Shown here: piece after piece, positions 1,081 through 33,115 of the stretch
How the letters are laid out: every line of letters starts with the position of its first letter
Numbering within the stretch: the first letter of the stretch is position 1
Assembly: GCA_002269645.1 (NCBI GenBank)
Contig: NIVC01000102.1
Span: 1 to 64,000, forward strand
From: Macrostomum lignano
Lineage: Eukaryota
Direction: 5' to 3'
Length of the DNA stretch: 64,000 nucleotides
Position numbers and translations under genes: made by a program
Notes under the pieces: generated by a model
Databases searched by the model: none
Seen by the model: only the letters and a program-made list of their open reading frames with translations
Told to the model about the DNA's origin: nothing

Positions 1081-1663
1081 GCATGCCTCCATGCCTCCAG
1101 ATCTAGATTCCTTGATTCTATCCGTGATCCAAAGATCCAACTATACAATATCTCTATCAATCAAACACTAAGTTTGCTGCTCAATCTGCTTTCCATATAC
1201 CTTGCTTGAGGAGCATATGGATCAGTGAAGTCTAGCCAGTGTCGTTTAGATCGTCAAAAGCAATACAGCATGGCATTACAATGTATTTCAAGCGATTCAA
1301 ACGGCTATTACGCTAGTAGCATTCAACAAGATTGGTTTTGGCGCCACGCAATGTAAAATTTTTGGTACAATGTTACGTCAGTAGATACGAAGTACTATAA
1401 TAATTGTAATGCAGAACAGCGGCAGTAGCTAAATAATGACACCCGAACTTGAATTTTGCGGTAATATTACACGCAATAAATAGCATTGACATCGGAAGGC
1501 AATAAGTAAAACAGTAATAAGTATAAGCTATTGAATCGCGAGTACGCGATATGCACCATCACAGTTCGCAGCTATATAGGCAATTTGTTTTGAAGAGAAA
1601 ATAACAACAAGGCACACCCAGTATTGTTGAGTCAAAAGTAACAGTTCACAATGGGAGGCGGTG

Positions 1664-2285
1664 TCAGATCAGTTCTCTCAGTGCGAGCTCTCTAAAGGCG
1701 GCAACAGCGTGCGCCTGGCCAATCACCCCAGCGCCATCCAACAGGCAATCCGCGACGCGACTCGCCCGGCCGTAGCCCCGGCGCCAGGGGCCCTGCATCG
1801 TGAGCAGCAGGACGTCTTGCACTGGTTGAGAACAGTAGGCCTCCGCGTGGATGGTGTGGCCCGCCAGCTGATGTCTTCGCCTGCGGAGGGTCTCGCTAGG
1901 TGATCGCAGCAGTCTGGCAGCGCGGCGTTCTGCAGGACGACTCGGATGGAGCGGAAGGCCACCCAGGCCAGGCCCCTGCGTCGCGCCAAGTCCTCCTGGA
2001 CACTGGGCACAAGATCGCCGGGGTACGTGAAGCACGCGCAGCGAGGTAGAGCTGCTGCATGACCGTCGGGTGTCCCAGCAGGTGATTTTGATAGGCAGCT
2101 CCGCAGGTACAGTCATCACCTCCGTCTTCTCGATGTTCACCGCTAGCCCGACCGATGCCGCAGCTGCCACCAACCAGGCTGTCTAGCATGCGCTGAGCTC
2201 CCTCAGCCGTAGAGGGGGGCAGCGCCAAGTCGTCGGCGTAACCCATGAGTGACAGCCGCAGGTCCTCTGAAGACATTCAGAGGTG
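1664..2285 (-). mobile_element. Non-LTR retrotransposon 3' fragment (RTE-like RT), internally deleted and frameshifted
   Basis: GYADDLAL (YADD at 2229-2240), GLAVNIEKTEVM, FRYLGSL, then C-terminal LRRRRHQLAGH..QPVQDVLL, spread over three frames. Confidence 0.8.
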
Positions 2286-2289
2286 CGAG

Positions 2290-3350
2290 GACATTCTGAA
2301 GAGAGAAAAGAGAAATATTATTTTTCACTTGTGAAAAGGATAATTAAATTTTATTAGCAGAGCTACGAGAAAGGGTGAGGCTGAATAGGAAAATAGGGTG
2401 GGGCTGGAGGGGCGAAGAGGTTGAGGCTGGGGTAGGAGAGGGTGAGGCTGGAGGGGAGGAGAGGATGGGGCTGAAGAGGAGAGAGTGGGGCTGGGGGAAG
2501 AAGGGGGTGGGGCTGGAGGGGACATGAGAGCGAGGCTGAAAGAGAACAAGGGTAGGTCCTGGAGAGAAGGATAGGGGTTGGAAGGAAGGAGATGGTAGGT
2601 TTGTGGGGAGAAAAGGGTGAGGATTCAACTGGAGGACATAGTAGGGCTAGAGGAGGGGACGAGGGGGTATTGAAGGAAAGAAGAGAGTAGAGGATAGGGG
2701 GTAGGAGGACGAGGTTGGAGGAGAAAAGGTGATGTTAGAGAGGAGAAAGGGTGAGGGCTAGACAGGAGGGTGAGGCTAACGGAGAGAAGAGGGTGAGGCT
2801 GCATGGAAGGAGGGTAGGACTGAAGGCAAGGAGGGTAGGGCTAGAAGGAAGGGGGTGGGGCTACAGAAGAGAAGAGGGTGGGGCTGGAGGGTAGGAGGGT
2901 GAGGCTGGAGGGGAGAAGAGGGTGGAAGCTGGAAGGGAGGGCAGGGCTGGAGGGTAGGAGGTTGGGGCTGGAGGGGAGAAGAGGGTGGAAGCTGGAAGGG
3001 AGGGCGGGGCTAGAGGGTAGGAGGGTGGGGCTAGAGGATAGGAGGGTGGGGCTGGAGGGTAGGAGGGTGGGGCTGGAGGGTAGGAGGGTGGGGCTGGAGG
3101 GTAGGAGGGTGGGGCTGGGGGAGAAGAGGGTGGAAGCTGGAAGGAGGGCAGGGCTAGAGGGTAGGAGGGTGGGGCTGGAGGGAAGGGGTGGGGTGGGCTA
3201 CAGAAGAGAAGAGGGTGGGGCTGGAGGGAAGGAGGGTGGGGCTAGAGGGTAGGAGGGTCGGGCTAGAGGGTAGGAGGGTGGGCTGGAGGGAAGGAGGGTG
3301 GGGCTAGAGGGTAGGAGGGTAAGGCTGGAGGGAAGGAGGGTGGGTCCAGG
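2290..3350. repeat. Purine-rich degenerate ~21-bp tandem repeat (GGGTAGGAGGGTGGGGCTGGA)
   Basis: Visible G/A-rich repetition. The 2878-3252 ORF is a translation of the repeat. Confidence 0.9.
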
Positions 3351-3779
3351 TACAGAGTGGGTCACACTGCTCTGGGTCCAGGTACAGAGAGTAATAAATA
3401 AGTGCTAATTACACCTGAGCGCAAATTAATTAAGTAAAGCCAAAGTGGTACAGGTGTTAATTACACCCGCGGAAATAATAACACTCAAAGCCGACTTAGA
3501 TCAGGTGTTAATTACACCTGTTTTACGTCATAGACAATTTCAATTATCGCGGAGGCCCAACATCGGCCAGCAGGCCGGGGTCGGCGACAAGCTCTTCAAT
3601 GTCTTCAAGCTCTTCAATGTATTTGTTTAGCTTCACTTTTTCCCCATTTCAATACTTTAAAAAAGAATCAATAATACAAATAAATCGAATGCGCGCTTGG
3701 AGGAATTCAGCCGCCTAAATTTGTTTTCTGGTCTTTTTATAATAACCAAGATTATAGGTCATACTGCTCTCAATGTACC

Positions 3780-4065
3780 TGTAGATGAGCCTGAGCACAA
3801 GCTGAGAGATCCTTTCCTTTTCATGGCGTTGAGCGTGGGCCATGGTGACGCCAGCTATTCTGGAGAAGTCTTGTTTTAAATTAAGATCCTTATATCTAGA
3901 GTGACACCCAATAAGGCTGCAGAGTCAAAGCATTGTATGTCGTCCTTGCCAAGTTTAAGTGAAGGCTTTTCGGGGCCCTGTGATGTGGTCACCTAGCTTT
4001 GTGCTTAAAGAACTGGCCTTATGGTTTTTGTTGGATTAATGGTGATGCCAACGTCGTCCAGCCAT
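3780..4065 (-). mobile_element. Degraded LINE RT thumb-region fragment
   Basis: Minus-strand translation with stops: WLDDVGITINPTKT...LKLGKDDIQCFDSAALLGVTLD, resembling the W...INPxKT...YLGVxLD motif of non-LTR RTs. Confidence 0.45.
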
Positions 4066-4469
4066 TTTTTCCAAATCAAAAAAAATCAGCACTTTTTTGG
4101 AGAAAAATACATGTATATCAAAAGTTGCTAAAAAGTGGGACGTGGGAGGCCAGGTACCATTGATGGCCCCGGCCCTCCTACTTTAAAAGTAGTAGGGGCA
4201 TGGCCCCACTGCCCCCGTTCCGACGCTTGTGATTATATAGGTAAGGAGTGAATATATACCAGGCCTTGATAGGAGACAGAATCACCCTTGAGGGACGCCG
4301 CGCGGCTTGAAGGCTTCGCTGATTGCCTCACCCTCCTCGATTTGAATCACCTGTCATCAAGATTAGCTGGAGACGATCCCGACTATGCTGAGAGAAATAT
4401 AAGTATCACATTCAAAAAAACTTACTTACGCCTAGCTAATTATAGATACATGTATAGTTGTGTCAGACA

Positions 4470-6310
4470 CCCACATCTCCGCTCCAGCCTACTCAACTCC
4501 GCTCCAGCCTACTTATCTCTGCTCCAGCCTACTTATCTCCGCTCCAGCCTACTCAACTCCGCTCCAGCCTACTCATTTCCGCTCCAGCCTACTCATCTCC
4601 GCTCCAGCCTACTTATCTCCGCTCCAGCCTACTCAACTCCGCTCCAGCCTACTCATCTCCGCTCCAGCCTACTCAACTCCGCTCCAGCCTACTCATCTCC
4701 GCTCCAGCCTACTCAACTCCGCTCCAGCCTACTCATCTCTGCTCCAGCCTACTCAACTCCGCTCCAGCCTACTTATCTCTGCTCCAGCCTACTTATCTCC
4801 GCTCCAGCCTACTTATCTCTGCTCCAGCCTACTCAACTCCGCTCCAGCCTACTTATCTCTGCTCCAGCCTACTTATCTCCGCTCCAGCCTACTTATCTCT
4901 GCTCCAGCCTACTCAACTCCGCTCCAGCCTACTTATCTTTGCTCCAGCCTACTTATCTCCGCTCCAGCCTACTCATCTCTGCTCCAGCCTACTCAACTCC
5001 GCTCCAGCCTACTTATCTCTGCTCCAGCCTACTTATCTCCGCTCCAGCCTACTTATCTCTGCTCCAGCCTACTCAACTCCGCTCCAGCCTACTTATCTCT
5101 GCTCCAGCCTACTTATCTCCGCTCCAGCCTACTCAACTCCGCTCCAGCCTACTCATTTCCGCTCCAGCCTACTCAACTCCGCTCCAGCCTACTTATCTCT
5201 GCTCCAGCCTACTTATCTCCGCTCCAGCCTACTTATCTCTGCTCCAGCCTACTCAACTCCGCTCCAGCCTACTTATCTTTGCTCCAGCCTACTTATCTCC
5301 GCTCCAGCCTACTCATCTCTGCTCCAGCCTACTCAACTCCGCTCCAGCCTACTTATCTCTGCTCCAGCCTACTCAACTCCGCTCCAGCCTACTTATCTCT
5401 GCTCCAGCCTACTCAACTCCGCTCCAGCCTACTTATCTCCGCTCCAGCCTACTTATCTCCGCTCCAGCCTACTCAACTCCGCTCCAGCCTACTCATTTCC
5501 GCTCCAGCCTACTCAACTCCGCTCCAGCCTACTTATCTCTGCTCCAGCCTACTCAACTCCGCTCCAGCCTACTCATCTCTGCTCCAGCCTACTCAACTCC
5601 GCTCCAGCCTACTCAACTCCGCTCCAGCCTACTTATCTCCGCTCCAGCCTACTTATCTTTGCTCCAGCCTACTCAACTCCGCTCCAGCCTACTTATCTTT
5701 GCTCCAGCTTACTTATCTCCGCTCCAGCCTACTCAACTCCGCTCCAGCCTACTCAACTCCGCTCCAGCCTACTTATCTCTGCTCCAGCCTACTCAACTCC
5801 GCTCCAGCCTACTCATCTCCGCTCCAGCCTACTCAACTCCGCTCCAGCCTACTTATCTCTACTCCAGCCTACTCATCTCTGCTCCAGCCTACTCAACTCC
5901 GCTCCAGCCTACTTATCTCTGCTCCAGCCTACTCAACTCCGCTCCAGCCTACTTATCTCCGCTCTAGCCTACTCATCTCTGCTCCAGCCTACTCAACTCC
6001 GCTCCAGCCTACTTATCTCCGCTCCAGCCTACTTATCTCCGCTCCAGCCTACTCATCTCCGCTCCAGCCTACTCAACTCCGCTCCAGCCTACTCAACTCC
6101 GCTCCAGCCTACTCAACTCCGCTCCAGCCTACTTATCTCCGCTCCAGCCTACTTATCTTTGCTCCAGCCTACTCAACTCCGCTCCAGCCTACTCAACTCC
6201 GCTCCAGCCTACTCATCTCCGCTCCAGCCTACTCAACTCCGCTCCAGCCTACTCATCTCCGCTCCAGCCTACTCAACTCCGCTCCAGCCTACTCATTTTC
6301 GCTCCAGCCT
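4470..6310. repeat. 20-bp minisatellite (GCTCCAGCCTACT[C/T]A[A/T]CT[C/T]C), ~92 copies
   Basis: Exact 20-bp register over 1.84 kb, with variation confined to a few positions. Confidence 0.98.
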
Positions 6311-7047
6311 AAAGTTGGGTTTATAAGAAAAACGCTAATTTAATGTTACTAGAGATTGACACAGATATAGATTATGTATTATTATTATATTTATATAAAG
6401 TTAACCGTTCACAACATTTTAGCATTTAACAACATGCACCCTATAAACAACATTCACAGGAGTCCAGGACTATGACTGTGATAGAAAAGTTTAGTCAGCA
6501 AAGCAAACAAAATTAACAAAAATAAATCTGTAAGTTAATTCAATTTAATGAATGAATGAACTAATACATTATACTAGTAAACTAGTTCATTCTAGTTATT
6601 TCTAGTGACATTCAACTAGTAAATAAAGCTTTAATAACTGTGCGCTCGATAAATAATTGAATCGTGAGGGTGGTGTTTTGTTTTGTTTTTAACGGGGGTG
6701 TTTAACGCTAAACATACTATTATCAGAAAGCCGTTAACAACATTTTATACATTCATTCCTTTGGCAGGTAGATTCCTGGTTGGCAAGCGTTTTAGCTTTT
6801 CACTGTATGCAATAAAAACAATGCAAAAATGCATACAAAACGCAAAATATGCAAAATACTGAATACAAAATTTATGCATTTCACAAAATGCTGCAGTGTC
6901 AATATAAAAGATTAAGCTTACTGCAATCAAGATGGCAAACAGCCATGGAAAAGTGCAAGTTGAGCACAGATCAGAACAAAATTACCCGATTTATAAAAGT
7001 GCAAAATCAGCAGCATTGGCGGATTTGAATTGAAATGCAATTGGATA

Positions 7048-7222
7048 TTGGGCGATTCCCACAGCTATTAGGGGCGATTCTCACAGCTATTAGGGGCGAT
7101 TCTCACAGCTATTAGGGGCGATTCTCACAGCTATTAGGGGCGATTCTCACAGCTATTAGGGGCGATTCTCACAGCTATTAGGGTCGATTTCCAGCTATTA
7201 GGGGCGATTCTCACAGCTATTT
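7048..7222. repeat. 22-bp minisatellite (GGGGCGATTCTCACAGCTATTA)
   Basis: About 8 tandem copies. Confidence 0.95.
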
Positions 7223-7469
7223 ATCATTATATTTTTACATTCAAAATACAGTCAAAGTGGCAGTCAAAGTCAGAAATTCTCCAGCTAAGTCGCCAGGCTC
7301 CGCAGCTCTTCATCAGGATCTGTTCGGGTGCCGCAAGAACCTGTGAGAGCTCCGCAAGCTGCACATGTCGGTCAGATTTTGATTTCTGCGGCATGCTAAA
7401 AGTAAAGCCAAATTGCGTAAATTTTGAATTTTCAAGCTTAATAAAAACCAATATTCAGATTCTTGATGG

Positions 7470-8030
7470 AGCACTCTACCCCTCTCCTCACTCTACCCCA
7501 CTCCTCACTCTACCCCTCTCCTCACTCTACCCCTCTCCTCACTCTACCCCACTCCTCACTCTACCCCTCTCCTCACTCTACCCCTCTCCTCACTCTACCC
7601 CTCTCCTCACTCTACCCCACTCCTCACTCTACCCTCTCCCCACTCTAGCCTCCCCTCACTCTACCCCTCTTCATCAGTCTACCCCTCCCCTCACTCTACC
7701 CCTCTCCTCAGTCTACCCCTCTCCTCACTCTACCCCACTCCTCACTCTACCCTCTCCTCACTCTACCCTCTCCCCACTCTACCCTCTCCTCACTCTACCC
7801 CTCTCCTCACTCTACCCCTCTCCTCAGTCTACCCTCTCCTCAGTCTACCCCTCTCCTCACTCTACCCCTCTCCTCAGTCTACCCTCTCCTCAGTCTACCC
7901 CTCTCCTCACTCTACCCTCTCCCCACTCTACCCTCTCCTCACTCTACCCTCTCCCCACTCTACCCTCTCCTCACTCTACCCCTCTCCTTCTCACTCTACC
8001 CCTCTCCACTGTACCCCACCTCTCCATCTA
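7470..8030. repeat. CT-rich ~19-bp tandem repeat (CTCACTCTACCCCTCTC-type)
   Basis: Visible repetition. Confidence 0.92.
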
Positions 8031-8419: not shown

Positions 8420-12035
<3,616 letters not shown>

Positions 12036-12071
12036 TAGATCTTGTGTTCTTAATATACTACTACCGGCTTC

Positions 12072-12130
12072 CGGGGCCGGCGCGTCCGGGGCCGGCGCGT
12101 CCGGGGCCGGCGCGTCCGGGGCCGGCGCCA
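12072..12130. repeat. GC-rich 15-bp repeat (CCGGGGCCGGCGCGT) x~4
   Basis: Visible tandem copies. Confidence 0.9.
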
Positions 12131-12234
12131 CTGTCCCCGGACTCGTGGGCTCGGCATTGTGCGGAAATAAAGAACTAGCAATCTGAGCAATCTGACCATA
12201 TTTGCCAACATGTGGCCTCCAGAGTGACATAATG

Positions 12235-12850
12235 CACAACATAATGCACAAGTGTAGCCAGCGCTGGCCACCCCAAACATAATGCACAAGTGTAGCCAGC
12301 GCTGGCCACCCAAAACATAATGCACAAGTGTAGCCAGCGCTGGCCACCCCAAACATAATGCACAAGTGTAGCCAGCGCTGGCCACCCCAAACATAATGCA
12401 CAAGTGTAGCCAGCGCTGGCCACCCAAAACATAATGCACAAGTGTAGCCAGCGCTGGCCACCCCAAACATAATGCACAAGTGTAGCCAGCGCTGGCCACC
12501 CAAAACATAATGCACAAGTGTAGCCAGCGCTGGCTACCCCAAACATAATGCACAAGTGTAGCCAGCGCTGGCCACCCAAAACATAATGCACAAGTGTAGC
12601 CAGCGCTGGCCACCCAAAACATAATGCACAAGTGTAGCCAGCGCTGGCCACCCCAAACATAATGCACAAATGTAGCCAGCGCTGGCCACCCCAAACATAA
12701 TGCATAAATGCAGCCAGCGCTGGCCACCCCAAACATAATGCACAAATGTAGCCAGCGCTAGCCACCCAAAACATAATGCACAAATGTAGCCAGCGCTAGC
12801 CCCCCTAAACAAAATGCATAAATGCAGCCAGCGCTGGCCACCCCAAATAT
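12235..12850. repeat. 38-bp minisatellite with an internal 12-bp palindrome GCCAGCGCTGGC
   Basis: Period 38 (e.g. 12241 and 12279), about 16 copies. Confidence 0.96.
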
Positions 12851-12859
12851 AACATTGAC

Positions 12860-14510
12860 AAATGTCAAGAGCCACCATATCGAACATGAAAGAGCTATCA
12901 TGTCAAACATTAAAGAGCCACCATGTCAAACATTAAAGAGCCACCATGTCAAACATTAAAGAGCCACCATGTCAAACATTAAAGAGCCACTTTGTCGAAC
13001 ATTAAAGAGCCACCATTTCGAACATTAAAGAGCCACCATTTCGAACATTAAAGAGCCACCATTTCGAACATTAAAGAGCCACCATGTCAAACCTAAAAGA
13101 GCCACCATGTCGAACATAAATGAGCTAGTATGTTGAACATAAAAGAGCCACCATGTCAAACATTAAAGAGCCACCATGTCAAACATTAAAGAGCCACCAT
13201 GTCAAACATTAAAGAGCCACCATGTCAAACATTAAAGAGCCACCATGTCAAACATTAAAGAGGCACCATGTCAAAACATAAAAGTGTGACCATGTCAAAC
13301 CTAAAAGAGCCACCATGTCTAACATAAAAGAGCCACATTGTAAAACATTTAAGAGCCACCATGTCAAACATATAGGTGACTTTATGTCAAACATATAAGT
13401 GACTTTATGTCAAACATATAAGTGACTTTATGTCAAAAATTAAAGAGCCACCATTTCGAACATTAAAGAGCCACCATGTCAAACATTAAAGAGCCACCAT
13501 GTCAAACATAAAAGAGCCACCATTTCGAACATTGAAGAGCCGCCATTTCGAACATGAAAGAGCTATCATGTCAAACATTAAAGAGCCACCATGTCAAACA
13601 TTAAAGAGCCACTTTATCGAACATTAAAGAGCCACCATGTCAAACATAGAAGAGCCACCATGTCAAACATAGAAGAGCCACCATGTCAAACCTAAAAGAG
13701 CCACCATGTCGAACATAAATGAGCTACCATGTCGAACATAAAAGAGCCACCATGTCAAACATTAAAGAGCCACCATGTCAAACATTAAAGAGCCACCATG
13801 TAAAACATAAAAGAGCCACCATGGTAAAACATTTAAGAGCCACCATGTCAAACATATAGGTGACTTTATGTCGAACATATAAGTGACTTTATGTCAAACA
13901 TTAAAGAGCCACCATGTCAAACACTAAAGAGCCACCATGTCAAACATAAAAAAGCCACCATTTTGAACATTGCCATTTCGAACATAAAAGAGCCACCATG
14001 TCAAACATAAAAGAGCCATCATGTCAAACATTAAAGAACCACTTTGTCTAACAATAAAGAGCCACCATTTCGAACATTAAAGAGCCACCATGTCGAACAT
14101 TGAAAAGCCACCATGTGAAACATTAAAGAGCTACCATGTCAAACCTAAAAGAGCCACCATGTCGAACATAAAAGAGCCACAATTTCGAACATAAAAGAGC
14201 TACCATGTCAAACATTAAAGAGCCACCACTTCGAACATTAAAGAGCCACCATGTCAAACATAAAAGTGCCACCATGTCAAACATTAAAAAGCCACTTTGT
14301 CAAACATAGAAGAGCCACCATGTCAAACATAAAAGAGTTACCATGTAGAACATAAAAGAGCCACCATGTCAGACATTGAAAAGCCACCGTATCAAACATA
14401 AAAGAGTTACCATGTAGAACATAAAAGAGCCACCATGTCAACATAAAAGAGCCACCATGTCAAAGATTAAAGAGCCACCATGTCAAACATAAAAGATACA
14501 CAATTTCAAA
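12860..14510. repeat. 23-bp minisatellite (AAAGAGCCACCATGTCAAACATT), ~70 copies
   Basis: Visible tandem copies with point variants. Confidence 0.96.
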
Positions 14511-14599
14511 CGTAAAAGTAAGCTAATTTTAAAGGAGCCGCTATAATGCTATGGAAATTGTCGCACTAGCTACTTTTTTTCTGGTGGATGCTTGCTATC

Positions 14600-14700
14600 A
14601 TGGTGGATGCTTGCAATCTGGGGGATGCTTGCAATCTGGGGGATGCTTGCTATCTGGGGGATGCTTGCTATCTGGGGGATGCTTGCTGTCTTGGGATGAT
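14600..14700. repeat. 18-bp repeat (TGGGGGATGCTTGC[A/T]ATC) x~5
   Basis: Visible tandem copies. Confidence 0.85.
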
Positions 14701-15664: not shown

Positions 15665-17300
15665 ATGTCGACATTCAACCAGAAACTGGACAGCATGAAG
15701 GAGTCGCTCGCTTCGCTATTCAAAAGCCGTCGGACAAGCAAGTCGAGTCAGCGCACTACCAGCACCAGCAGCACTAGCTCTAACAATGCAACCGTCTGTC
15801 CGACTGAGGAAAGCGGCTCCGCCACCACGGCGAACACCATCTCGACGCCGCAGAACGTCCGTCGTGTTCTGCATATCACTTTCGACGCTGGGCGACAGTC
15901 GTTCAGTGGCATTCCGGAGCACTGGAGGTCCTACTTTGGTCCCGCTGATAGCCACTCCTTTGCAGAGACTCTCACCGAAGCTGTCGAGGCGGAGACCCCA
16001 CCTGGCGCTGTTAGAACAGACGATTCCGGCGTTTCCATGGCAACCAGTCCGAAGACGCCAACTTCAGCGGATCAGTCAGCCAACGAGAAGCCGCTAACGC
16101 CGCCCAAGGAGCTGCTGAGCCTGACCTACGACCGAAACAGCGGAAAGTTCGTCGACTTGCCGCCGCACTGGCAGGACCGACTGGAGCGCAACAACCTTCT
16201 GGAGCCCGAGTTCCAGAAGAATCCCGAGCTTCTCGTATCCGTGTTCGCCATGATGGACGAAGAGCTGAAGGCGATGAGTCTGGAAGGCATCAGTCTGGAC
16301 AAGGGCATGTACTCGAGCTCGCCAGCTTCATCCAAAAATAACGACGGACTTAAGTAAGTGCTTTGCCTTGTTGAAACTAGTTTTACACTTTGCGTATGAC
16401 ACTGTACAGTAATAGAGTTCAATCTTTTTTTGACGAGCTTGCATGCTACGACCGAGCTATTTTAGTAATATCAAAAAATAGTTTAGGCATCGCTCATGAT
16501 GTCAATTACAGCATCTTTCTGTTAGAAATCCTGCTGATCAATCTGGTGCCCTTCTAATGTCAATCTTATTCCCTTTTTATGTCACTCTGGTGTCACTCTG
16601 ATGTCAAACTAGTGTCAATATATTTTCACTCTCTGTTGGGTCCTGCTGATGTCAACCTCGTATTAATCTAGTGGGTCACTATTATCACTCTGATGTCTGA
16701 TGTACTGTATTTACTCACTTTACTGAACTTCAGGTAGGGTCCTTCCGTTGTCACTCTGAAGTCACTCTGGTGTTACTTTAATTCCTCTCTGTTGTCACTC
16801 TGGTAGCTGGTTGTGATCTTGTGTAGTGGAGTCACTCTAGTGTCACTCTTTTTGTATAAGCAATCTTCCACAGTCGCCTTTTGTCCCTTCCCTTTAATTA
16901 AAGTTCCTCTTTTCTCTAATTAAAGCTGATGATACTCAAGTGCTACTCTTTCGTCATTCCGATGTTACTCATTTCACTCTTTTATCACTCTAATGTGTGT
17001 TACTCTAGTGTCAAACTGGTGTCACTCTGGGTTCACTCTGGCCTGAATCTGACAGCATCGAATGCGTAACGCCACCATCTACCACACTCCACTCGCATTT
17101 AACACACACGAAATCCACCAACATGTAGCTACGTGTACGAAATCGCTGCGGATAGTTCGAACTCCTCTAGCGAGCAGGACTTGCAACAGCAGCAGCAGCC
17201 CGAGCAGCCGACTAACCAGCAGCCGTCCAACTCGAGCTGGAATCGTCGTAGACCCTCGCTGGTTCGAATGCGAGCGGTAGCCGCTCCATCACTGAAGTGA
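15665..17300 (+). CDS. PAK-like tandem CRIB/PBD-autoinhibitory-domain protein lacking a kinase domain (~286 aa; 230 aa if unspliced)
   Basis: Exon 1 is 15665-16353 (AA|GTAAGT). Exon 2 is 17129-17300 (TAG|C TAC), phase-compatible, stop TGA at 17298-17300. Repeat 1: ISTPQNVRRVLHITFDAGRQSFSGIPEHW. Repeat 2: LSLTYDRNSGKFVDLPPHWQDRLERNNL..EFQKNPELLVSVF, matching the PAK PBD/inhibitory switch (HVGFD..TGEFTGMPEQW..LL....EQKKNPQAVLDVL). Confidence 0.75.
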
Positions 17301-19178
17301 CAGACTGACGAACTGACGTCATGGTCAATTCTGATCAGCTGATCTTTTATTTAGCAACTCAATCTTGCCTATATAGTTCTGGTTGATTTTGGTGCAGCAG
17401 TTACGATGTTAACATGGTCTCTAAAGTACAGGAACTAATTTTGTATGTGTTTTTAGTCAGGTTTGTTCGCAGACCGAGTCCAACCATAGACAGTAGAGAT
17501 GTGGCCTCGTGCAGAAAGTATAGTAGTATACATGTATAATAGAATCTGAAATCTCAGTCTGGTAGAATTTCAAGAAAAATAGCTTTGACAAGCTTGTGAG
17601 TAGCAACCCTCGGACGAAACTGCACGCACGTGACGCACTTTATAGCTTCATTTTTAATTTGAAAGTCCAGAAGGTGAGAGAACTTAAAACCGAAAAAAGC
17701 AACAAAAAACCAACCTGAAAAACCGATTGTAAAAGCGCTAATCTACTTTATTTGTCCATGAAGTGTGCATTCACATCGTGTAGCTAACACTACTCAAAAC
17801 ACCTGAACGCAGCACCTGCTACACTCAAACATTATTCTACTTAAACTTAAATTCTAATTGACAATGACATGAATAACCTATTTTTCGCATTTTTTCATCG
17901 GTCTGACATGATGTTCTCGTAAAGCCAGTGACAAAAATGCTTTGATAATAAGCGACATGATCGAATCTAAATTATTTGTAATGAATCTCGAATTTTTTCG
18001 ACACAAATTTTTAAGGTTCTGTCGATTTTGTAAACAAAAATAGTTCTTTCCCTTTGAAAGTCAGTACTACTTATTCACTAAGTAGTGCGATGAGGTTATA
18101 AAAATTCATTATGAAATTTGTTTTCGCGGAAACTCTTTCAAAGCACTCTTAGTCTTGTGTTCAATGTTGCTTTTTAATTTTATTTTCTGGCTCTGAGTCC
18201 AGCTGTTGAGTGCATCTCAGACTGTGCGCAAATCTTTATCACCTGTCTGTTCTTATTGCCATCTTTGTTGTTTTTCTTTTGCAATTCACCACGATCCGCG
18301 AAATCCCAAGTGGACTGCTAATGTTTTTAATAACCTCGAAATGTCAGTTTACAATTTACGTGCTCAAAACTGATTTCGAAATTGCGCGAAGTTTAATTGA
18401 AGAACTTTAACAAAAAAATAATCGAATTGTTTATCTATCGCTTTGATATTTTTATTATTAGTCAGACGCCAAAAGAAGCGTTAGTTCTGTGACTGCCTTC
18501 ATTTCCTGTGAACAGTTTGCTTGGGAGCAACATTTGCTTTTAATGACAGGTGTTGTGGCAGCGTAAATCACTAAACTAAATTTATAAATTGAACGAGCAA
18601 AGAAAATCTCAAGTAATAACGTTACTTTTGTCGATTATCGATAAAACAATGAAAATATAAACAATAAAATAAATACCTAGAATTTTCTCTATGCTCTACT
18701 TACAGTAGAAATAGTAGAATATTGCAGATATTAAACTACTTCCATTGAAAATTTATTAACTACTCTACGTAAAGTCACTTTTCTGATTTTATTTCCAAAC
18801 TATGATCAGTTGATTTCTGTCTGATACAGAAACTATGAGGTGTAGAGTGCTGGACGAGATTCATAATACAGTTAGTGACACTACAAAGAAAGTCTAAAAG
18901 TACAGACATTTATCACTAAGCTTTGTGATTACGAGCGTATCATAGGAATTCTTCGTAATGCTACATAGATGAAAATTTAAAACAACAACACAGCTAAATA
19001 TAGCAGAAAACAATTAAAGTGTAGTATATCTAATTGTGCTACAAGCTAGAACAATGAAGGCAAGTACAAGTACTATAGTTTTTCAAAAAATTAGTCATGC
19101 ATTTAATTGCTATATTCAACCGCGATCAGTGGGTTCTTCATTATATGTTCCGTGCTCAGGTACTGGGTCCCTCTACTC

Positions 19179-19430
19179 ACAACCCTGATCAGTCCTCAGG
19201 TAGATAATTAGGTAATACGGTCCCTCCACTGACAACCCTGATAAGCCCTCAGGTAGATAATTAGGTAATACGGTCCCTCCACTGACAACCATGATAAGCC
19301 CTCAGGTAGATAATTAGGTAATACGGTATCTCCACTCACAACCCTAATCAGTCCCCAGGTAGATATTTAGGTAATGAGGTCTCTCCACTCACAACCGGAT
19401 CAGTTTTCAGGCAAATAATTAGATAATGAG
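19179..19430. repeat. 53-bp tandem repeat x~5
   Basis: Period 53 (ACAACCC at 19179 and 19232). Confidence 0.9.
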
Positions 19431-19613: not shown

Positions 19614-22600
19614 TTAGTCTCCAAAAATCCCAGCAAAGGTGCGCCTAAGACTCTGGATCGCATCCGGCTCTTTCGAATCTTCGTTTGTTTTGACCGGATG
19701 CTGACCATCTGCCAGGGGCGATTTGACGACTATCGGTTGAGCTGGCAGCTGATTGTCGCAATGAGCTGAGTTGGACGATGGCGCGGCCGACATTCGAGCC
19801 AGAGTCAGCTCCGCCACGCTGCGCCTGATGCTGTCAGCCTCGTCTGGACAGAATTTGGACGCCTCATCAAGCACCAGCTGCAGTGACTCTGAGCCGTGAG
19901 CCTTGGAGGATTGAATGAGACAGGCGTGGGAACAAAGAAAATTAGTTGGAGTGTAAATATCCCAATTCTTGTTTTGGTGAGATTCGTTAAATGTTCGCAG
20001 CATCCTTGAAAGAACTTCTAGAACATCCTTGAAGGAACATTTGCAAAATCATCGAAAGAACTTTTGTAAAATCATGTTTAAAAGGAATTTTTGCAACATT
20101 CTTGAAGGTAATTTGGCAAAATCCTTGAAGGCTATTTGGCAAAATCCTTGAAAGCAATTTGAGGACATCCTTGAAGGCAGTTTTGCAACATCCTTGAAGA
20201 CAATCTGGCAACATCCTTGAAAGAAAACTTTTTCAAAGTCATTGAAAGGAACTTGTGCAGCATTCTTGAAGACACACTTTCAACATCCTTGTAGCTCGTA
20301 GGAGCTTTCGCAGAATCAAGAGCATTTTTGCCCTATCATCAAAGAAACTTGTACAATCATAACATCTGTGAAGTTTTCAAACCCACGTCTCATTTTAGAA
20401 TTTTTATTAAAAAATTTCAAGCTCACTGCAGACTTTTGGGTTTTATCAGTTTGAGAATTTCAACTGTATCAAATATTTAAATAGTACAATTAAATTTTAA
20501 GAATATTTACAAGAATTGCAGTACACTATTGAAAGCGCACAACATGTCGCCAGAATTAACGGCACTTACATCAACAATTTGCACGTCATCCTCGCTCCGT
20601 TGCACGGCCTCCAACGAGCAAATGTCCAGTCCGCCAAAGTGGTCAGAAATCGCTTCAGTCCAGCTGCGCAGCCTGGATTTCCCGGAGAGAAAAGCAGTTT
20701 GATTCTTTGCTGGTAGTGATAAGAATGCTCAGTCACTCACAATTCTTACCTGTCCGTTACGGGAAGTTTCTCCACTGGACCGTCTTTTAAACCAACTTTT
20801 GATGTGCGTCGACTAAAATTAATCATAAATTTCCCAATTTGGCTAATTGCAAAAGGTTTACTAGAATGGAGAAATGAAGAAATAAGGCATACCGACAGAC
20901 ACACTATGACAGACTTAGTGTCTTCGTGTCTTCGTGCCTTGGTGTCTCAGTGTTTGAGACATTGAGATTTGCCGTCACGGCAACTACGTAAGACACTGAT
21001 ACACCAAGGAAGACACTAAAAAAGTCACTAAGACACTGCGAGACACAAAGACAATAAGACATCAAAATACTGAGACACCAAGACGCCAATTACGCTGGTA
21101 TAAGGTACTAAAACACTGATACATTAAGCATTAAGCCGAGAAAGCACGAAAACATGATGACACTATGATATTGAGATACTGAAACGATAAGACACTAAGT
21201 CGCGAAGACACCAGGACAAGAAGACACCACGACACCAAGACACTAAGATGCTGAGACACTAAGACACTAAGTCGCGAAGACACCAGGACAAGAAGACACC
21301 ACGACAAGAAGACACCACTACACCAAGACACTAAGATGCTGAGACACTAAGACACTAAGTCGCGAAGACACCAGGACAAGAAGACACCACGACACCAAGA
21401 CACTAAGATGCTGAGACACTAAGACACTAAGTCGCGAAGACACCAGGACAAGAAGACACCACGACAAGAAGACACCACGACACCAAGACACTAAGACGCT
21501 GAGACACTAAGACACTAAGTCGCGAAGACACCAGGACAAGAAGACACCACGACACCAAGACACCACGACACCAAGACACTAAGACGCTGAGACACTAAGA
21601 CACTAAGTCGCGAAGACACCAGGACAAGAAGACACCACGACACCAAGACACTAAGATGCTGAGACACTAAGACACTAAGTCGCGAAGACACCAGGACAAG
21701 AAGACACCACGACACCAAGACACTAAGACATTGAGACACTAGGACACTAAGTCGCGAAGACACCAGGACAAGAAGACACCACGACACCAAGACACTAAGA
21801 CATTGAGACACTAAGACACTAAGTCGCGAAGACACCAGGACAAGAAGACACCACGACACCAAGACACTAAGACGCTGAGACACTAAGACACTAAGTCGCG
21901 AAGACACCAGGACAAGAAAACACTCAGGACAAGAAGACACCACGACACCAAGACACTAAGACGCTGAGACACAAAGACAAGAAGATACCAGGACACAAAA
22001 CCACTTAGAGAAATTTTTAGCCACATCAAAGCCATTCATTCTTCAGCTCACGCGAACGCCCAATAGTTTTTGTCAACTTTTTGCACAATAATTTCGTTGC
22101 TCGCTCCGAGAGCAGCCTCGGCTGTGCCCCACTTATGTTCATAAGATGTTCCTCCAGCCGCAGCGAAAGCAGCAAAGTTCGACATCTCTTCCGCATTATT
22201 TGCAATGATCTGAAGTCAGTTTGATAGTTTGAATTATTTCAAAGACTGTTTCATATCTTGAAATTTAATTCCTCTTAACTGTACCTTTCCAAAGTTACCG
22301 TGACGGTTGCCAGACTTGAGCAATAACGGATAGGTGGCTTTTTGGTTGCTTAACGCCTGAAAAATTGTTTATTTTATTTTATTTTATTTTATTTTATTGA
22401 GAAAATTTTTTTTATTTTACTATTGAACAAGATGAAGAACATACAGGTAATTTTTTTCTTACCTGCTTGCGCCAATTTGAATAAAACGTCTGTTCAATTA
22501 ACGGAAAATAGTTGTCTCCCAAACGTTTTTGAATTCGCGCCAAGTTGTTATACTGCGGAGCGGGAATTTTACTTGTATGAATTAATCAAGGATAAAACAA

Positions 22601-24304
22601 TTAGGAAACCCTTTCCTCGAAAAAAAAGCCACTTAAAAGTTAAGTAGAATGGAAAAGGCTACAAAAATTCGCTTACAACCCAGCCTCTGTCTGAGAAGTT
22701 GTACACGCTCAGCGATTGGTTGATGCAGGGTACATTCGCGCGGTCTAGGCCAATCAGAATAGAACGCCATTCGGGACCCAGCGGTGGCTGCAGCAGCAGG
22801 GCGAAATTCGGACGGAAAGGCCTGCGCAGGTGAGTTGTTAGTTATCTGATGATGCAGGATTGATCAGTGAGGCTAAGAGTCGGTTTGGATCACGTGATGT
22901 GAAGCAGGCATTCAACCCTACGGCACAGAGTTTTTACATGACATACTAAATGACAGAATTGGCAACGATGCCCCTCCAAAAGGAATTGAACTTCCTTAAA
23001 AATAGTTTTGATAAACACTCGTTTCAGAGTTAAACACGCGGAAGTAACGGGGAAGTTATGAGGGGATGTAAACTTTCGTGTTCTGGATCAGCCAGAATTC
23101 CAATTAGATTTGCAGCCAAGCAACCAATTTCGTGGAACACGAAAATTGCCCTCCAATTTGCATATTTTTAATTTTCGATTCGCTGGACAGTGAGAAATTG
23201 TTGCTAGTAAGTTGGTCGAATTTAGCAGCAGACGAGTTGCAGCCAGTGTGAGGGGACAAGCGGTCCATAATTAATCACTCAAGTAGGATGCGTACACTTA
23301 CGGACACACGAAGTCATTCAGAGTGTACAGCGTACACCTACTCACTGAATCATGGAGGCAATGTCGTTCTCCGATCGCAGACTGGCAGACTGATGACGGT
23401 CCAGGATCACTTCAGCGGGACCGTTGGAGGCCACGGAAATGTTTATCTGGCTGAGTGGGGCCTGCGATTCCAGGAAATTGTGCTATATTAAGTCTTGAAA
23501 ATGGGCATTGCGGGTTTGGAGACGAAGTCAGGACGTCTTTGCATAGGGCTTTAGCACCAGGGGCTTTAGCACCAGGGGCTTTAGCACCAGGGGCTTTAGC
23601 ACCAGGGGCTTTAGCACCAGGGGCTTTAGCACCAGGGGCTTTAGCACCAGGGGCTTTAGCACCAAGGGCTTTAGCACCAGGGGCTTTGGCACCAGGGGTA
23701 CCAGCCCCCTTTGGCCCCCCTTTACCCCCTTGTCTAAGCAGACCTGTGTTCGGTCAAAGTGAAACTTCACTCACCTGTTCAACTTTGATATCCAGACCGT
23801 TGGGACACCGCTTATGGTGAAAGTATTTCGACCTGAAATTTTAAAAAGATCAGTATAAATAGAGCATTGGTATCCTCGTTAGTAGCTGATGTCCTACTGA
23901 AATGCGTGTAAATATTTTACTAGCAGAACACAAGTTATTTACCAATTAGTTTGCGAATCGTCAATCACCAGTAGCATCTTGCACCTGTCGCCATGGTGAT
24001 GCAGATTTAGATGGTGACTCCAGCTGCCGTGAAGACTGTTCTCGAGAATGTCTCTGGCGGCTGAGAGCACACTGCTGCCGCTGCCAGTGGAGAGTTTGTG
24101 TCTATGATGATGCTGCTGCAGCTGCTCTGTGCGCTGCTCGTGAGGCTGACCGCTGCAGTGACCGGCAATCCCAGCGTGGCTGCATCGCTTCTGTGGCTGC
24201 TTCGGCTGCTGCTCCTGCTGCTGTTGCTGCTGCTGCTCTCTACTAAAAGCAGCCTCGCCTTGCAGATCTCCGTGAGACAACCGGCGTTTTAAATAGCCAA
24301 GCAT
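19614..24304 (-). CDS. Syn: Synapsin-like protein, 10 coding exons, 484 aa
   Basis: Exons: 24304-23943, 23832-23775, 23461-23346, 22821-22677, 22552-22463, 22356-22285, 22209-22052, 20812-20750, 20672-20570, 19901-19614. All GT-AG, phases consistent, total 1455 nt (last acceptor least certain). Motifs: domain A LKRRLS, LLVIDDSQTNWSKYF, IKVEQ, FRPNF, VYNFSDRGWV, FPLIEQTFY, LKSGNRHGNFGK, FGGLDICSLEA, and domain E IQSLRRTFAGIFGD. Confidence 0.93.
20010..20300. repeat. Degenerate ~22-bp repeat (CATCCTTGAAGG..TTTGCAA) in synapsin intron 9
   Basis: Recurring CATCCTTGAA. Confidence 0.75.
20880..21990. repeat. Higher-order ~72-bp repeat built from 8-bp GACAC(T/C)A(A/G) subunits, in synapsin intron 7
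   Basis: GACACTAA GTCGCGAA GACACCAG GACAAGAA GACACCAC GACACCAA GACACTAA GATGCTGA recurring. Confidence 0.93.
23546..23700. repeat. 15-bp repeat (GGGCTTTAGCACCAG) x~10 in synapsin intron 2
   Basis: Visible tandem copies. Confidence 0.95.
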
Positions 24305-25191
24305 TTCCGCTGTTTAGTTTAAGGATCGCGAGTTTTTCTGGATGAGCAAACTTTCTGCTTTCGTGAGATGCACAAGCATTTCAACGTTCTGACAGATTTC
24401 TGCTTTCAGGAAAGCCAAGATTTCTGCTTCTAGAAAAGCCAAGGTTTCTGTTTTTAGGGAAGTCAAGATATCCTCAGACAAGCCAAGCTTTCTGCTTTCG
24501 GGGAAGCCAAGATTTTTGCTTTCAGTCAAGTTTTTTTACTTTTATAAAAGCCGAAACTTCTACTTCCTTAAGCAGCATTTTTAAATTTCAAAAAAATGCA
24601 GACAAACAGGGAATATTCTTCTGCAATGTAAAATTCTGACAGATAAACAGCTGGTTGATATCATACTCACCCATTTCTGGTTAGTCTTATGCTAGACTTA
24701 TTTCCTCAGTCAGTCTGACAACAGCTGTATCGATCAATACCAAAGAAATATACAGGCATAAAGTCAGATTGAATTTCCGCGATGAAGTTCCGGAGGGTGA
24801 GTTTCTAGAATTAGTTTATATTTATGTGCCTGTGAGTCCTATGCAGGCACACAGCTTCCCTAATTCCCTGTTGGCTCCCGCAGCCTCCATCCAACAGGAT
24901 ATTAGCTATGAACAGAGCTCCCCGCATTCATGGACAGCTCAACCTAGACATCTAGATCTAGGACAAGGATTCCGTGAATTTTTTTAGAAATGAGCTTGAA
25001 GGTCGCGGGATCGGGGAACTTAAGCTTGCTGTATCGTTGGGGGCATGTAGTTTTGTTCTAAGATTCTAAAAGTTCTTTTTCTATGAAATTCTTCGATCAA
25101 TAAAGAATATTCTCACCAACGTGAATCCGATTTCTTAAAAAGAAGATATGTTAGAAAAAGCGTTTTTCTGAATATCTTTAGAAACTTAATT

Positions 25192-25830
<639 letters not shown>

Positions 25831-26153
25831 GAATGAACACTGATTATAGTGCACCCGTCACATTCCCAGCCGTGACCATTTGCATAACCCAAGCATTCAT
25901 TCACAATAAAGCCGTCAGCAAACTGTCACAAACAGCACGATTCCGTCAGTTTGAGTGACAGCATGGCGTTAAATTTACAACACTTATTTGACTTTTGCCT
26001 GTCAATAACGCCTTATCGGCTTTTATCAATTTATTGTATATATTTGAATGTCAGAGAAATAAAACAAATCATGTTTTGGACATACGAATGCATTTATTAT
26101 AACACGAACGCTACATAAACATTTCCACCATCGCCATGATATACAGCGGATGG

Positions 26154-30633: not shown

Positions 30634-31479
30634 ATAGTCATTCAAAAATGTCCCTCAGTTACATATAAGTGTAGTAAAGAGAGACAAAGAGTAGAGAAAG
30701 CTTCAAAGCAAAGTCACTATTACTACAGCTTCAAATAGCACTACTCAGCCGAAAAGCATGTCCTAGAAGTTTCCAATCCAAAATCAAGGACTACTCAAGA
30801 AGAGGGAAGAGAAACTACGTTTTAGGGCAGGTTTTACCAAAAATCACATTACCGAAAGATCTTTTACGGGAATAGGACCTGCCCCGAACTAGCCAATAAG
30901 TACGCCTAAAGTAATATCATAATATCATAAAATATAAAAGTCAGCACTCTTGGCGTGTACACATAAAAAATAACTATAATGATAATAACAGACGAGGGAT
31001 AACTTAGCCTTAGCCTTAGAAAGCGGAAACACTGCAGCTTCGAAATGCCAGCTGTTAAATGTTTATCTTTCAAACCGACACTGCAGTTCTCGCTAGAGAA
31101 AAAAATCACAAGATAGGCAAAGGAGCACTGGGCCTCTCCAGATTTGATTGATACGATTCGAGGGCGGCATGAAAGTTTCAAAAATCTCGTCCAGATTGAC
31201 TGGAAGGCTGTGGGCAGCAGCTCTCCCTGTCAGTCAGACGTGACCCGTGCCGACAGAAATTGTGATGTAGTCTGTCGTTTTGAAGAGCCGTGCAGCACGC
31301 TAAAAAGTAAAAAGTAATCCTTTGCGCTTGCACTTTCAACTCTGCGATTTAAGTAAAAAAAACACTTTGCAAACGAAACCTTTTTAAGTGGTAACTGAAA
31401 AACATAACTGCAGAAAAGGGCTTTTGTGTGATACTTGATCTCCTGAAAAGGGCAATTGACTGCTGCTGATTGGAAAAAA

Positions 31480-33115
31480 GGGAGATTCTTCGATGGGAGA
31501 TTCTTCGATTGGCGATTCTTCGATGGGCGATTCTTCGATGGGCGATTCTTCGATGGGCGATTCTTCGATGGGCGATTCTTCGATGGGTAATTCTTTGATG
31601 GGCGATTTTTTATGGGCCATTCTTTGATGGGCGATGCTTCGATGGGCGATTCTTTTATAGGCGATTCTTTGATGGGCGATTGTTCGTTGGGCGATTCTTC
31701 GATGGGCGATTCATTGATGGGCAATTCTTCGATGGGCGATTCTTCGATGGGCGATTCTTCGATGGGCGATTTTTTATGGGCCATTCTTTGATGGGCGATT
31801 CATTGATGGGCAATTCTTCGATGGGCGATTCTTCGATGGGCGATTCTTCGATGGGCGATTCTTCGATGGGCGATTCTTCGATGGGCGATTCTTCGATGGG
31901 CGATTCTTCGATGGGCGATTCTTCGATGGGTAATTCTTTGATGGGTGATTCTTCGATAGGCGATTTTTTTATGGGCCATTCTTTGATGGGCGATGCTTCG
32001 ATGGGCGATTCTTTTATGGGTCATTCCTTGATGGGCGATTCTTCGATGGGCGATTCTTTTATAGGCGATTCTTTGATGGGCAATTCTTCGATGGGCGATT
32101 CTTCGATGGGCGATTCTTTGATGGGCGATTCTTCGATGGGCGATTCTTTTACGGGCGATTCTTTTATGGGTCATTCTTTTATGGGCGATTCTTCGATGGG
32201 CGATTCTTGGACGGGCGATTCTTCGATGGGCGATTCTTTTATAGGCGATTCTTTTATAGGCGATTCTTTGATGGGCGATTCTTCGATGGGCGATTCTTTT
32301 ATAGGCGATTCTTTGATGGGCGATTCTTTGATGGGCGATTGTTCGTTGGGCGATTCTTCAATGGGCGATTCATTGATGGGCAATTCTTCGATGGGCGATT
32401 CTTCGATGGGCGATTCTTCGATGGGCGATTCTTCGATGGGCGATTCTTCGATGGGCGATTCTTTGATGGGCAATTCTTCGATGGGCGATTCTTCGATGGG
32501 CGATTCTTCGATGGGCGATTCTTCGATGGGCGATTTTTTTATGGGCCATTCTTTGATGGGCGATGCTTCGATGGGCGATTCTTTTATGGGTCATTCCTTG
32601 ATGGGCGATTCTTCGATGGGCGATTCTTTTATGGGTCATTCCTTGATGGGCGATTCTTCGATGGGTAATTCTTTGATGGGTGATTCTTCGATGGGCGATT
32701 TTTTTATGGGCCATTCTTTGATGGGCGATGCTTCGATGGGCGATTCTTTTATGGGTCATTCCTTGATGGGCGATTCTTTGATGGGCGATTCTTTTATAGG
32801 CGATTCTTTGATGGGCGATTCTTCGATGGGCGATTCTTCGATGGGCGATTCTTCGATGGGCGATTCTTCGATGGGCGATTCTTCGATGGGCGATTCTTCG
32901 ATGGGCGATTCTTCGATGAGCGATTCTTCGATGGGTAATTCTTTGATGGGTGATTCTTCGATGGGCGATTTTTTTATGGGCCATTCCTTGATGGGCGATT
33001 CTTCGATGGGCGATTCTTTTATAGGCGATTCTTTGATGGGCGATTCTTCAATGGGCGATTCTTCGATGAGTGATTCTTTGATGGGCGATTCTTCGATGGG
33101 CGATTTTTTATGGGC
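31480..33115. repeat. 15-bp minisatellite (GATGGGCGATTCTTC), ~108 copies
   Basis: Visible. It explains the MGDSS, IEESP and RRIAH ORFs. Confidence 0.98.

Follow-up and report, generated by a model that had tools for sequence, protein, structure and literature searches.

The stretch of DNA analysed here, below called the window, comprises 64,000 nt of the genome of the free-living flatworm Macrostomum lignano (assembly GCA_002269645.1, Mlig_3_7; contig NIVC01000102.1, positions 1-64,000), and at 15665-17300 on its plus strand it carries Mlig019290, a two-exon gene for a 286-aa protein with two modules derived from the p21-binding domain (PBD) of p21-activated kinases (PAKs) and no kinase domain. 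A previous sequence-only reading had proposed such a kinase-less PAK-like protein, ending either at the stop at 16357, which closes the unspliced open reading frame (ORF; 15665-16357, plus strand, 230 aa), or after a splice to 17129-17300; the spliced form is the one that corresponds to the deposited protein. Joining 15665-16353 to 17129-17300 keeps the frame up to a stop codon at 17298-17300, and the resulting protein has 100% full-length identity to NCBI BOX15_Mlig019290g2 and UniRef A0A1I8GUM9, the latter named "CRIB domain-containing protein" (CRIB, Cdc42/Rac interactive binding). An insect source of the DNA, also considered, is ruled out by this match. The donor at 16354 (AA followed by GTAAGT) and the acceptor at 17129 (tgtag followed by C) constitute the sole GT..AG solution giving the deposited protein, and the same holds in both other genomic copies of the gene. 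The ORF starts at the first possible start codon (context CAAAATG) after an in-frame stop six codons upstream. The gene is organized as follows:

15665-16353, plus strand: exon 1, codons 1-229 and two bases of codon 230 (ORF, splice, identity to the deposited model)
16354-17128, plus strand: intron of 775 nt, GTAAGT...TGTAG, phase 2, rich in arrays of the 11-nt unit TGTCACTCTGG (splice model)
17129-17300, plus strand: exon 2, from the last base of codon 230 through codons 231-286 to the stop codon, 17298-17300 (splice model, conservation in a paralog)

Exon 2 is clearly coding, because its residues YVYEIAADSSNSSSEQD and SLVRMRAV are kept in a paralog (A2, described below) in which the region is an uninterrupted coding sequence. 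The Mlig_3_7 gene models were built from RNA-seq transcript assemblies and their boundaries have experimental support (PMC5730564); since the models are transcript-derived, Mlig019290 is implied to be an expressed gene with a transcript-supported intron. The first canonical AATAAA lies as far as 1.36 kb past the stop codon. The "g2" suffix of the deposited model was considered as a sign of the second gene of a polycistronic unit and this was rejected, as the suffix numbers near-identical copies within a 95% transcript cluster. Concerning the intron itself, its 11-nt TGTCACTCTGG units all lie on the same strand and form two arrays detected by Tandem Repeats Finder plus scattered copies, and all eight plus-strand occurrences of GTCACTCT in the window fall within 16354-17128. 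The A2 model has no intron at this site and reads through it with about 12 extra codons, the intron of A2 and of subfamily B (see below) being placed in the linker between the two modules, which suggests either a gain, perhaps by repeat insertion, or a loss of the intron of Mlig019290.

The Pfam PBD profile (PF00786, length 59, gathering cut-off 21.3 bits) matches the whole protein in two stretches (45.6 bits, E 9e-12), and each module passes the cut-off when scored alone, module 1 (residues 59-91) with 31.6 bits over profile positions 2-34 and module 2 (residues 155-194) with 23.2 bits over positions 16-55; the profile check suggested with the sequence-only reading thereby gave a PBD match and no match to Pkinase. 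Judged by their sequences, the two modules complement each other as parts of a single PAK p21-binding domain and are not two full copies: the first consists of CRIB and hairpin, the second of hairpin and helices, and the earlier description of two PBD/autoinhibitory modules stands as regards two PBD-derived units and fails as regards complete repeats. All matches of a sequence search of the PDB were to the regulatory regions of PAK1, PAK2, PAK4 or PAK6, except for a single weak and unrelated one (E 0.25). The features of the protein, including those of the structure predicted with AlphaFold2 (AF2; confidence given as the predicted local distance difference test, pLDDT), are:

15671-15730, plus strand: amphipathic helix at the N-terminus, residues 3-22 (KLDSMKESLASLFK), with a basic patch after it (AF2, pLDDT ~66; kept in the family)
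15839-15937, plus strand: module 1, residues 59-91, with the one-histidine CRIB ISTPQNVRRVLHITFD, then beta-hairpin and short helix FSGIPEHWRSYF (Pfam PBD, PAK1/4/6 CRIB peptides in the PDB, AF2)
16091-16108, plus strand: PLTPPK, residues 143-148, agreeing with the class II SH3-ligand consensus PxxPx[RK] (motif scan)
16109-16318, plus strand: module 2, residues 149-218, CRIB-less, with hairpin LSLTYDRNSGKFVDLPPHW and three helices homologous to the inhibitory switch (Pfam PBD, phmmer, AF2)
17130-17180, plus strand: acidic/serine block YVYEIAADSSNSSSEQD, residues 231-247 (conserved with the A2 paralog)
17244-17279, plus strand: basic-serine motif RRRPSLVRMRAV, residues 269-280, including RRRPSLVR (family consensus R-(x)-S-[LF]-V)

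The CRIB consensus is I-S-x-P-x(2-4)-F-x-H-x-x-H-V-G. Module 1 reads I-S-T-P-Q-N-V-R-R-V-L-H-I-T at this place (ISTPQNVRRVLHITFD), keeping I, S, P and the second histidine, with the aromatic F changed to V, the first histidine to R and G to T; a full CRIB has both histidines and the aromatic, and module 1 is accordingly a partial CRIB. Its whole stretch (ISTPQNVRRVLHITFDAGRQSFSGIPEHWRSYF) comprises CRIB, beta-hairpin and short helix, while the inhibitory-switch helices are absent and nothing helical follows. Module 2 (LSLTYDRNSGKFVDLPPHWQDRLERNNLLEPEFQKNPELLVSVFAMM) comprises hairpin and inhibitory-switch helices and retains neither CRIB histidine, S152 being aligned to PAK1 H86 and the H83 position being deleted, with a P-P remnant left. 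The CRIB histidines had been described as eroded, and the count was right, one being kept in module 1 and none in module 2; the word is too strong for module 1, whose core is invariant. Because the one-histidine form recurs in the first PBD of protist PAKs and is strictly conserved here, it appears to be a working variant and not an eroded relic.

The inhibitory-switch tail claimed for the second module is indeed there: by phmmer, residues 151-199 align to residues 85-133 of PAK1 in the autoinhibited structure (PDB 1f3m, chain A), an alignment that extends further with PAK2. L173 is the equivalent of PAK1 L107 and is invariant in the family, and the equivalents of PAK1 W103, N111, N120-P121 and V127 are kept too. 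A family-specific extension, MMDEEL[KR]xM ... [YH]SS, belongs to the same module. The ordered islands of the full-length AF2 model coincide with these elements: helix 3-22; in module 1, strands 72-74 and 79-81 of the 72-81 hairpin and helix 85-91 (pLDDT 76-79); in module 2, strands 154-156 and 161-163 of the 154-163 hairpin and helices 167-175, 181-185 and 187-212. About 57% of the residues have pLDDT below 50 and form linkers rich in S, T, P and Q, so that in the predicted model the protein is largely disordered.

No kinase was found. The Pfam scan of the protein yielded no Pkinase match, and, with E allowed up to 10, only PBD and one spurious match to Ctr, with no BORG_CEP or other effector family. 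Tblastn with four PAK-type kinases on both strands of the window recovered the PBD region alone and no kinase-like sequence, and the same queries found no kinase within 10 kb around the other two genomic copies of the gene and two paralog loci. Because the kinase domain was tested for and is absent, the protein is not a PAK.

Relatives were sought exhaustively with phmmer among 1.84 billion representative proteins, with 14 matches at E <= 0.001, and by a profile search of a 5.8-billion-protein collection, which added one further member. In these searches the family was found only in M. lignano and on one contig of another sample. In M. lignano it comprises two subfamilies and at least eight gene copies:

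A1: Mlig019290, three genomic copies, identical protein
A2: Mlig032438 g1-g3, 351-352 aa, 48% identity to A1
B: Mlig011799g1, Mlig018897g1 and older UniRef models
B-like: P0004, 259 aa, a complete ORF on a 990-nt contig of run SRR28338165

A search for relatives of the same architecture had been proposed, and A2, B and P0004 answer to it, their full-length members carrying two PBD modules and no kinase. All family members are kinase-less, no kinase lies within 10 kb of the subfamily B locus, and on the P0004 contig, taken as a transcript, the kinase-less ORF is complete with stop and 3' untranslated region (UTR) in the same layout. Paralogs P0002, P0004 and P0017 also score above the Pfam PBD cut-off. 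The N-terminal helix (..ASLF/ASWL), both modules and the [YH]SS motif are common to all full-length members; across subfamilies the invariant core of module 1 is ISTPQ.V.R..H and the invariant pattern of module 2 is FV.LPPHW..RL.RNNL....F..NP..L..VF..MD.EL..M. At its C-terminus every full-length member also carries R-(x)-S-[LF]-V. PxxPx[RK] occurs exactly once in each, built on a P[PL]TPP core and always within an inter-module linker of ~55 to ~130 residues that is otherwise unalignable across the family (chance per protein 0.14-0.28). Identical residues of A1 and A2 in the acidic/serine block are Y231, V232, I235, A237, D238, S240-E245 and D247. Two subfamily B models have a single module, P0022 (Mlig018897g1, 223 aa), which starts inside the linker and has module 2 only, and P0018 (UniRef A0A1I8GLP4), an older gene model without module 2; they may be prediction artefacts or real isoforms separating the modules. 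Outside the family, eight phmmer matches (among P0006-P0014) are protist STE20/PAK kinases with two tandem PBDs, such as Pharyngomonas kirbyi EP00761_P003036 and the cryptophyte Baffinella frigidus KAJ1473287.1, and P0005 and P0009, which come from metagenomes, have no kinase and 6-8 PBD matches each. The named kinase-less CRIB families (BORG/CDC42EP, SPEC and others) are not among the relatives in the exhaustive phmmer search. The second-best match, P0003 (1624 aa, 29 matched stretches), was discarded as an unrelated repeat matching only QKNPELL.

The three A1 copies differ from each other at 1-3 positions of the 861-nt coding sequence (0.12-0.35%), all of them synonymous third positions, and their introns diverge by 1.2-2.2%, their 2-kb downstream flanks by 2.0-2.5% and the upstream flanks of two copies by 4.5%, the third being unalignable; the coding sequence is ~6-10 times less diverged than the intron. 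Between A1 and A2 the proportion of synonymous differences is saturated (pS 0.64-0.96), with the nonsynonymous proportion (pN) ~0.23 in the modules and 0.39-0.43 in linker and tail, and the stop codon and C-terminal motifs are kept. P0004 and subfamily B share 48% protein identity overall and 81-91% DNA identity across the modules. Purifying selection on the gene is clear from these comparisons, and the signature, read in this way, is that of a working protein whose short conserved modules are joined by linkers free to vary, and not of a decaying fragment. As to the additional copies, both encoding the identical protein, one (NIVC01000102.1:116648-138290, reversed) lies inverted ~111 kb away on the same contig, and the other (L004, NIVC01000886.1:2319-23943) has 2 kb of upstream sequence unalignable with the other two and a downstream flank ~2% diverged. 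They could be true subgenome copies or assembly redundancy; Mlig_3_7 is highly redundant, and the triplicate near-identical A1 copies fit this (PMC5730564).

The nearest neighbour of the PBD gene is a convergent synapsin gene, whose end had been placed 2.3 kb downstream:

19614-24304, minus strand: synapsin gene, with an exon for domain A (23939-24304), two for Synapsin_C (22415-22585, 20510-20728) and a C-terminal exon that ends at 19614

Its assignment is borne out by Pfam Synapsin_C matches in two collinear minus-strand exons and by the domain A motif YLKRRLSHGDL at 23939-24304; the terminal synapsin ORFs had no Pfam match, the internal exons giving Synapsin_C. The synapsin C-terminus, IQSLRRTFAGIFGD followed by the stop, ends at 19614, with 2313 nt between it and the PBD gene's stop (17300), and the gap between the two genes agrees with the earlier description as AT-rich and non-coding (GC 0.32-0.42, no ORF >= 70 aa). 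The A2 locus (L001, 15021-18508) is collinear, with the PBD gene followed by a convergent synapsin, which indicates that the pair was duplicated as a block. An association of TIMP and synapsin genes is known from flies and mammals. At the A2 locus a TIMP/NTR-domain gene was called close to the exons of synapsin, ~9 kb downstream from the PBD gene, and no TIMP gene was found in the 64-kb window.

Other features of the window include a 53-nt tandem repeat at 19166-19427 (5 copies, 87% matches), just past the synapsin stop, and a 23/46-nt tandem repeat at 20001-20291 (~12 and 4.5 copies), just upstream of the last synapsin exon. A degraded non-LTR retrotransposon occupies 8940-11938 (plus strand), in which consecutive ORFs, shifted in frame, match RVT_1 (103 bits) and RNase H. 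At 55401-57452 (minus strand) lies an uninterrupted 683-aa ORF with GC ~0.3 and no Pfam match, which looks transposase-like (NIDGLPLYKSS...WPILIK) and may be a DNA-transposon-derived gene. Two plus-strand EF-hand ORFs, at 39664-39960 (EF-hand_6, 40.6 bits) and 46457-46924 (EF-hand_1, 23.4 bits), are probably exons of calcium-binding protein genes. Coding-looking long ORFs in several frames at 500-8000, 12000-14700, 21100-22000, 25100-25900 and 31200-33200 are tandem or microsatellite arrays, among them a GACA-type array at 25.1-25.9 kb; such arrays swamp tblastx comparisons and fit the 15% of simple and tandem repeats reported for this genome. The Rfam scan of the whole window gave no RNA family at gathering score.

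The closest resemblance of the modules is to metazoan group I PAKs. For the core of module 1 the scores are 72.0 with human PAK1/2, 71.8 with protist PBD1 and 57.5 with protist PBD2; for the tail of module 2, human PAK1/2 reaches 26.2, compared with 7.3 for protist PBD2 and -3.9 +/- 1.0 for shuffled sequences. On the most economical reading of these scores, a copy of the N-terminus of a metazoan group I PAK would have lost its kinase and then duplicated part of the hairpin region, the CRIB and switch functions being divided between the resulting modules. On this reading the one-histidine CRIB would have arisen convergently with that of the first PBD of the protist kinases. Descent from protist two-PBD PAKs, or horizontal transfer, was considered and rejected, the modules being no closer to protist PBD1/PBD2 than to human PAK1/2.

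With regard to function, the protein is probably a non-catalytic modulator of Rho-GTPase/PAK signalling, and we tentatively favour, as a reading by analogy in which our confidence is limited, an action in trans, probably inhibitory, on the group I PAK of the worm, in which targeting or regulation would fall to module 1, the PxxP motif and the termini. The two roles suggested in the sequence-only reading, a GTPase-insensitive dominant-negative PAK inhibitor and a Rac/Cdc42 decoy, are plausible. The precedent for inhibition in trans, which that reading had also cited, is the isolated inhibitory domain of PAK1 (PAK inhibitory domain, PID); its residues 83-149 can inhibit every group I PAK, an effect that L107F abolishes (PMC6110733). 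Module 2 would dock in the same manner on the catalytic domain of the worm's group I PAK, and the docked kinase would be held inactive or sequestered. Because module 2 is CRIB-less, this contact would not be directly released by Rac or Cdc42. Module 1, with a weakened or re-specified CRIB, would contribute together with the PxxP and terminal motifs to localisation or regulation; PxxPx[RK] and the C-terminal R-(x)-S-[LF]-V are possible adaptor-docking and phosphorylation sites, and the latter could be a phosphorylation or a docking site.

Several observations weigh against an inhibitory action on PAK. The kinase-inhibitory segment of PAK1 (~136-149, with K141) has no secure counterpart, though it is part of the 83-149 fragment: the phmmer alignment to PAK2 sets the PAK lysine opposite M204, and the alternative register, EL[KR]xM against QKYM, requires a 5-residue deletion in a region that AF2 places inside a continuous helix. 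The position of PAK1 D126 is variable in the family (S/S/A/T, in our reading of the phmmer alignment). Overall confidence of the full-length AF2 model is low (pLDDT 51, predicted template modelling score, pTM, 0.20), as is that of a model of module 2 only, which has the same elements (pLDDT 58). Foldseek top matches of both models are PAK4/PAK6 CRIB complexes, PAK1 1f3m_A and PAK2, with weak E-values of 0.1-0.6 (0.4-0.6 for the matches of the inhibitory-switch unit to 1f3m_A and 9m41_B), and because of these values the fold matches are corroboration and not independent proof. Neither Mlig019290 nor Mlig032438 turned up in a full-text search or in the supplements of three M. lignano papers, and no expression-level or tissue data were found there. 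Finally, the strong conservation of module 1 suggests that its own partner matters at least as much as that of module 2.

In another explanation, which we regard as possible, if rather doubtful, PAK plays no part: the protein would be a pure Rho-family GTPase effector or adaptor, like BORG/CEP, SPEC, RICs and Gic1/2. Its module 1 would bind a Rho-family GTPase in the active state, and the replacement of H by R may mean that a particular GTPase is recognised, while the remainder of the protein would recruit partners. Module 1 is indeed the better-scoring of the two (31.6 bits), its ISTPQ.V.R..H core is invariant across subfamilies, its score against human PAK1/2 CRIBs (72.0) matches that of protist PBD1s (74.4), the one-histidine CRIB occurs in eight protist PAKs and is therefore likely to work, and the conserved PxxPx[RK] suggests binding to an SH3 adaptor. 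These merits are offset by the replacements at the H83 and F81 positions, R and V in module 1. Mutation of both H83 and H86 gives the form of PAK1 that is commonly used as deficient in GTPase binding. An H83L H86L PAK1 construct is listed in PMC6703428. Moreover, the effector explanation leaves the strong conservation of a PAK-specific inhibitory-switch unit with its L107 equivalent unexplained, and Pfam, at E up to 10, returned neither BORG_CEP nor another effector family.

We consider it unlikely that the protein is instead a self-contained GTPase-gated switch, in which module 2 would fold onto the N-terminal helix or the C-terminal motifs in place of a kinase and a GTPase at module 1 would open the protein and expose docking motifs. 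Such a switch would account for the complementary split, by which a single chain retains the two halves of the PAK switch, and for the conserved N-terminal amphipathic helix and C-terminal motifs, otherwise left with no role; it is entirely inferential, AF2 has no confident packing between modules at the pTM quoted above, and the linker varies over its whole length range and does not align. Also improbable in our view is a more specific version of the action in trans favoured above, namely a natural, genetically separate autoinhibitory subunit of PAK, an endogenous equivalent of the PID, whose release would not depend on Rac/Cdc42 at the inhibitory module and would be controlled by the one-histidine CRIB, by SH3 partners or by phosphorylation of R-S-[LF]-V; in its extreme form the regulatory and catalytic halves of PAK would be partly separate genes in this lineage. 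Hardly credible, and already largely refuted, is an artefact or relic, either the truncated model of a real PAK whose kinase exons lie at another place or a fragment left by a duplicated PAK gene in decay, since the redundant assembly (PMC5730564), the remote AATAAA and the failure to find an expression table listing the gene, which would suit it, are opposed by the absence of kinase-like sequence in the window and at four other loci with a convergent synapsin 2.3 kb downstream, by a stop and C-terminal motifs conserved despite saturated synonymous sites, by the complete ORF with stop and 3' UTR on the P0004 contig from another sample, by coding differences that are all synonymous in a sequence far less diverged than its intron, and by the transcript-derived gene models.

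If PAK is inhibited in trans by this protein, it would illustrate how, after duplication, the regulatory part of a kinase can turn into a regulator in its own right, and the protein would be, to our knowledge, the first naturally encoded stand-alone PAK autoinhibitory protein. Even if it is a mere CRIB adaptor, the split PBD and the recurring one-histidine CRIB bear on the features needed for GTPase recognition. The interest is limited by the apparent lineage restriction of the family and by the fact that the gene is already deposited, as an uncharacterised protein. Over-expression and knock-down are practical, because transgenesis works in M. lignano (PMC5730564).

Non-catalytic CRIB proteins and the PAK autoinhibitory fragment are already known, and their natural stand-alone combination was not found in the literature searched, which described no kinase-less PAK-PBD protein and no endogenous PID, the nearest case being the tandem CRIBs of a Dictyostelium gelsolin-related protein. 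BORG/CDC42EP, SPEC/CDC42SE, plant RICs and yeast Gic1/2 are likewise small, largely disordered, non-catalytic and based on CRIB/PBD, yet the flatworm protein has no sequence match to these families (Pfam, E up to 10, gave PBD), and we know of no PAK-type inhibitory-switch unit in BORG/CDC42EP, SPEC, RIC or Gic proteins. P0005 and P0009 indicate that kinase-less tandem PBD proteins exist elsewhere, with many full repeats and not complementary halves. The protist two-PBD PAKs resemble the flatworm protein in having a first PBD with a one-histidine CRIB and no helices and a second PBD with a helical tail, both modules being collinear in one tblastn segment; they differ in carrying a kinase and in the full two-histidine CRIB of their second PBD, and the shared layout is probably convergent. 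With group I PAKs (PAK1-3) the flatworm protein shares the CRIB and hairpin F-x-G-[IM]-P-E-x-W, the inhibitory-switch helices and a PxxP motif of SH3 type. In contrast to them it is kinase-less, its single PBD is replaced by two complementary partial modules with ~55-130 disordered residues between them, R takes the place of the first CRIB histidine in module 1, module 2 is CRIB-less and the kinase-inhibitory segment lacks a secure counterpart, while the N-terminal helix, the MMDEEL[KR]xM extension and the C-terminal R-S-[LF]-V are features of the flatworm family's own.

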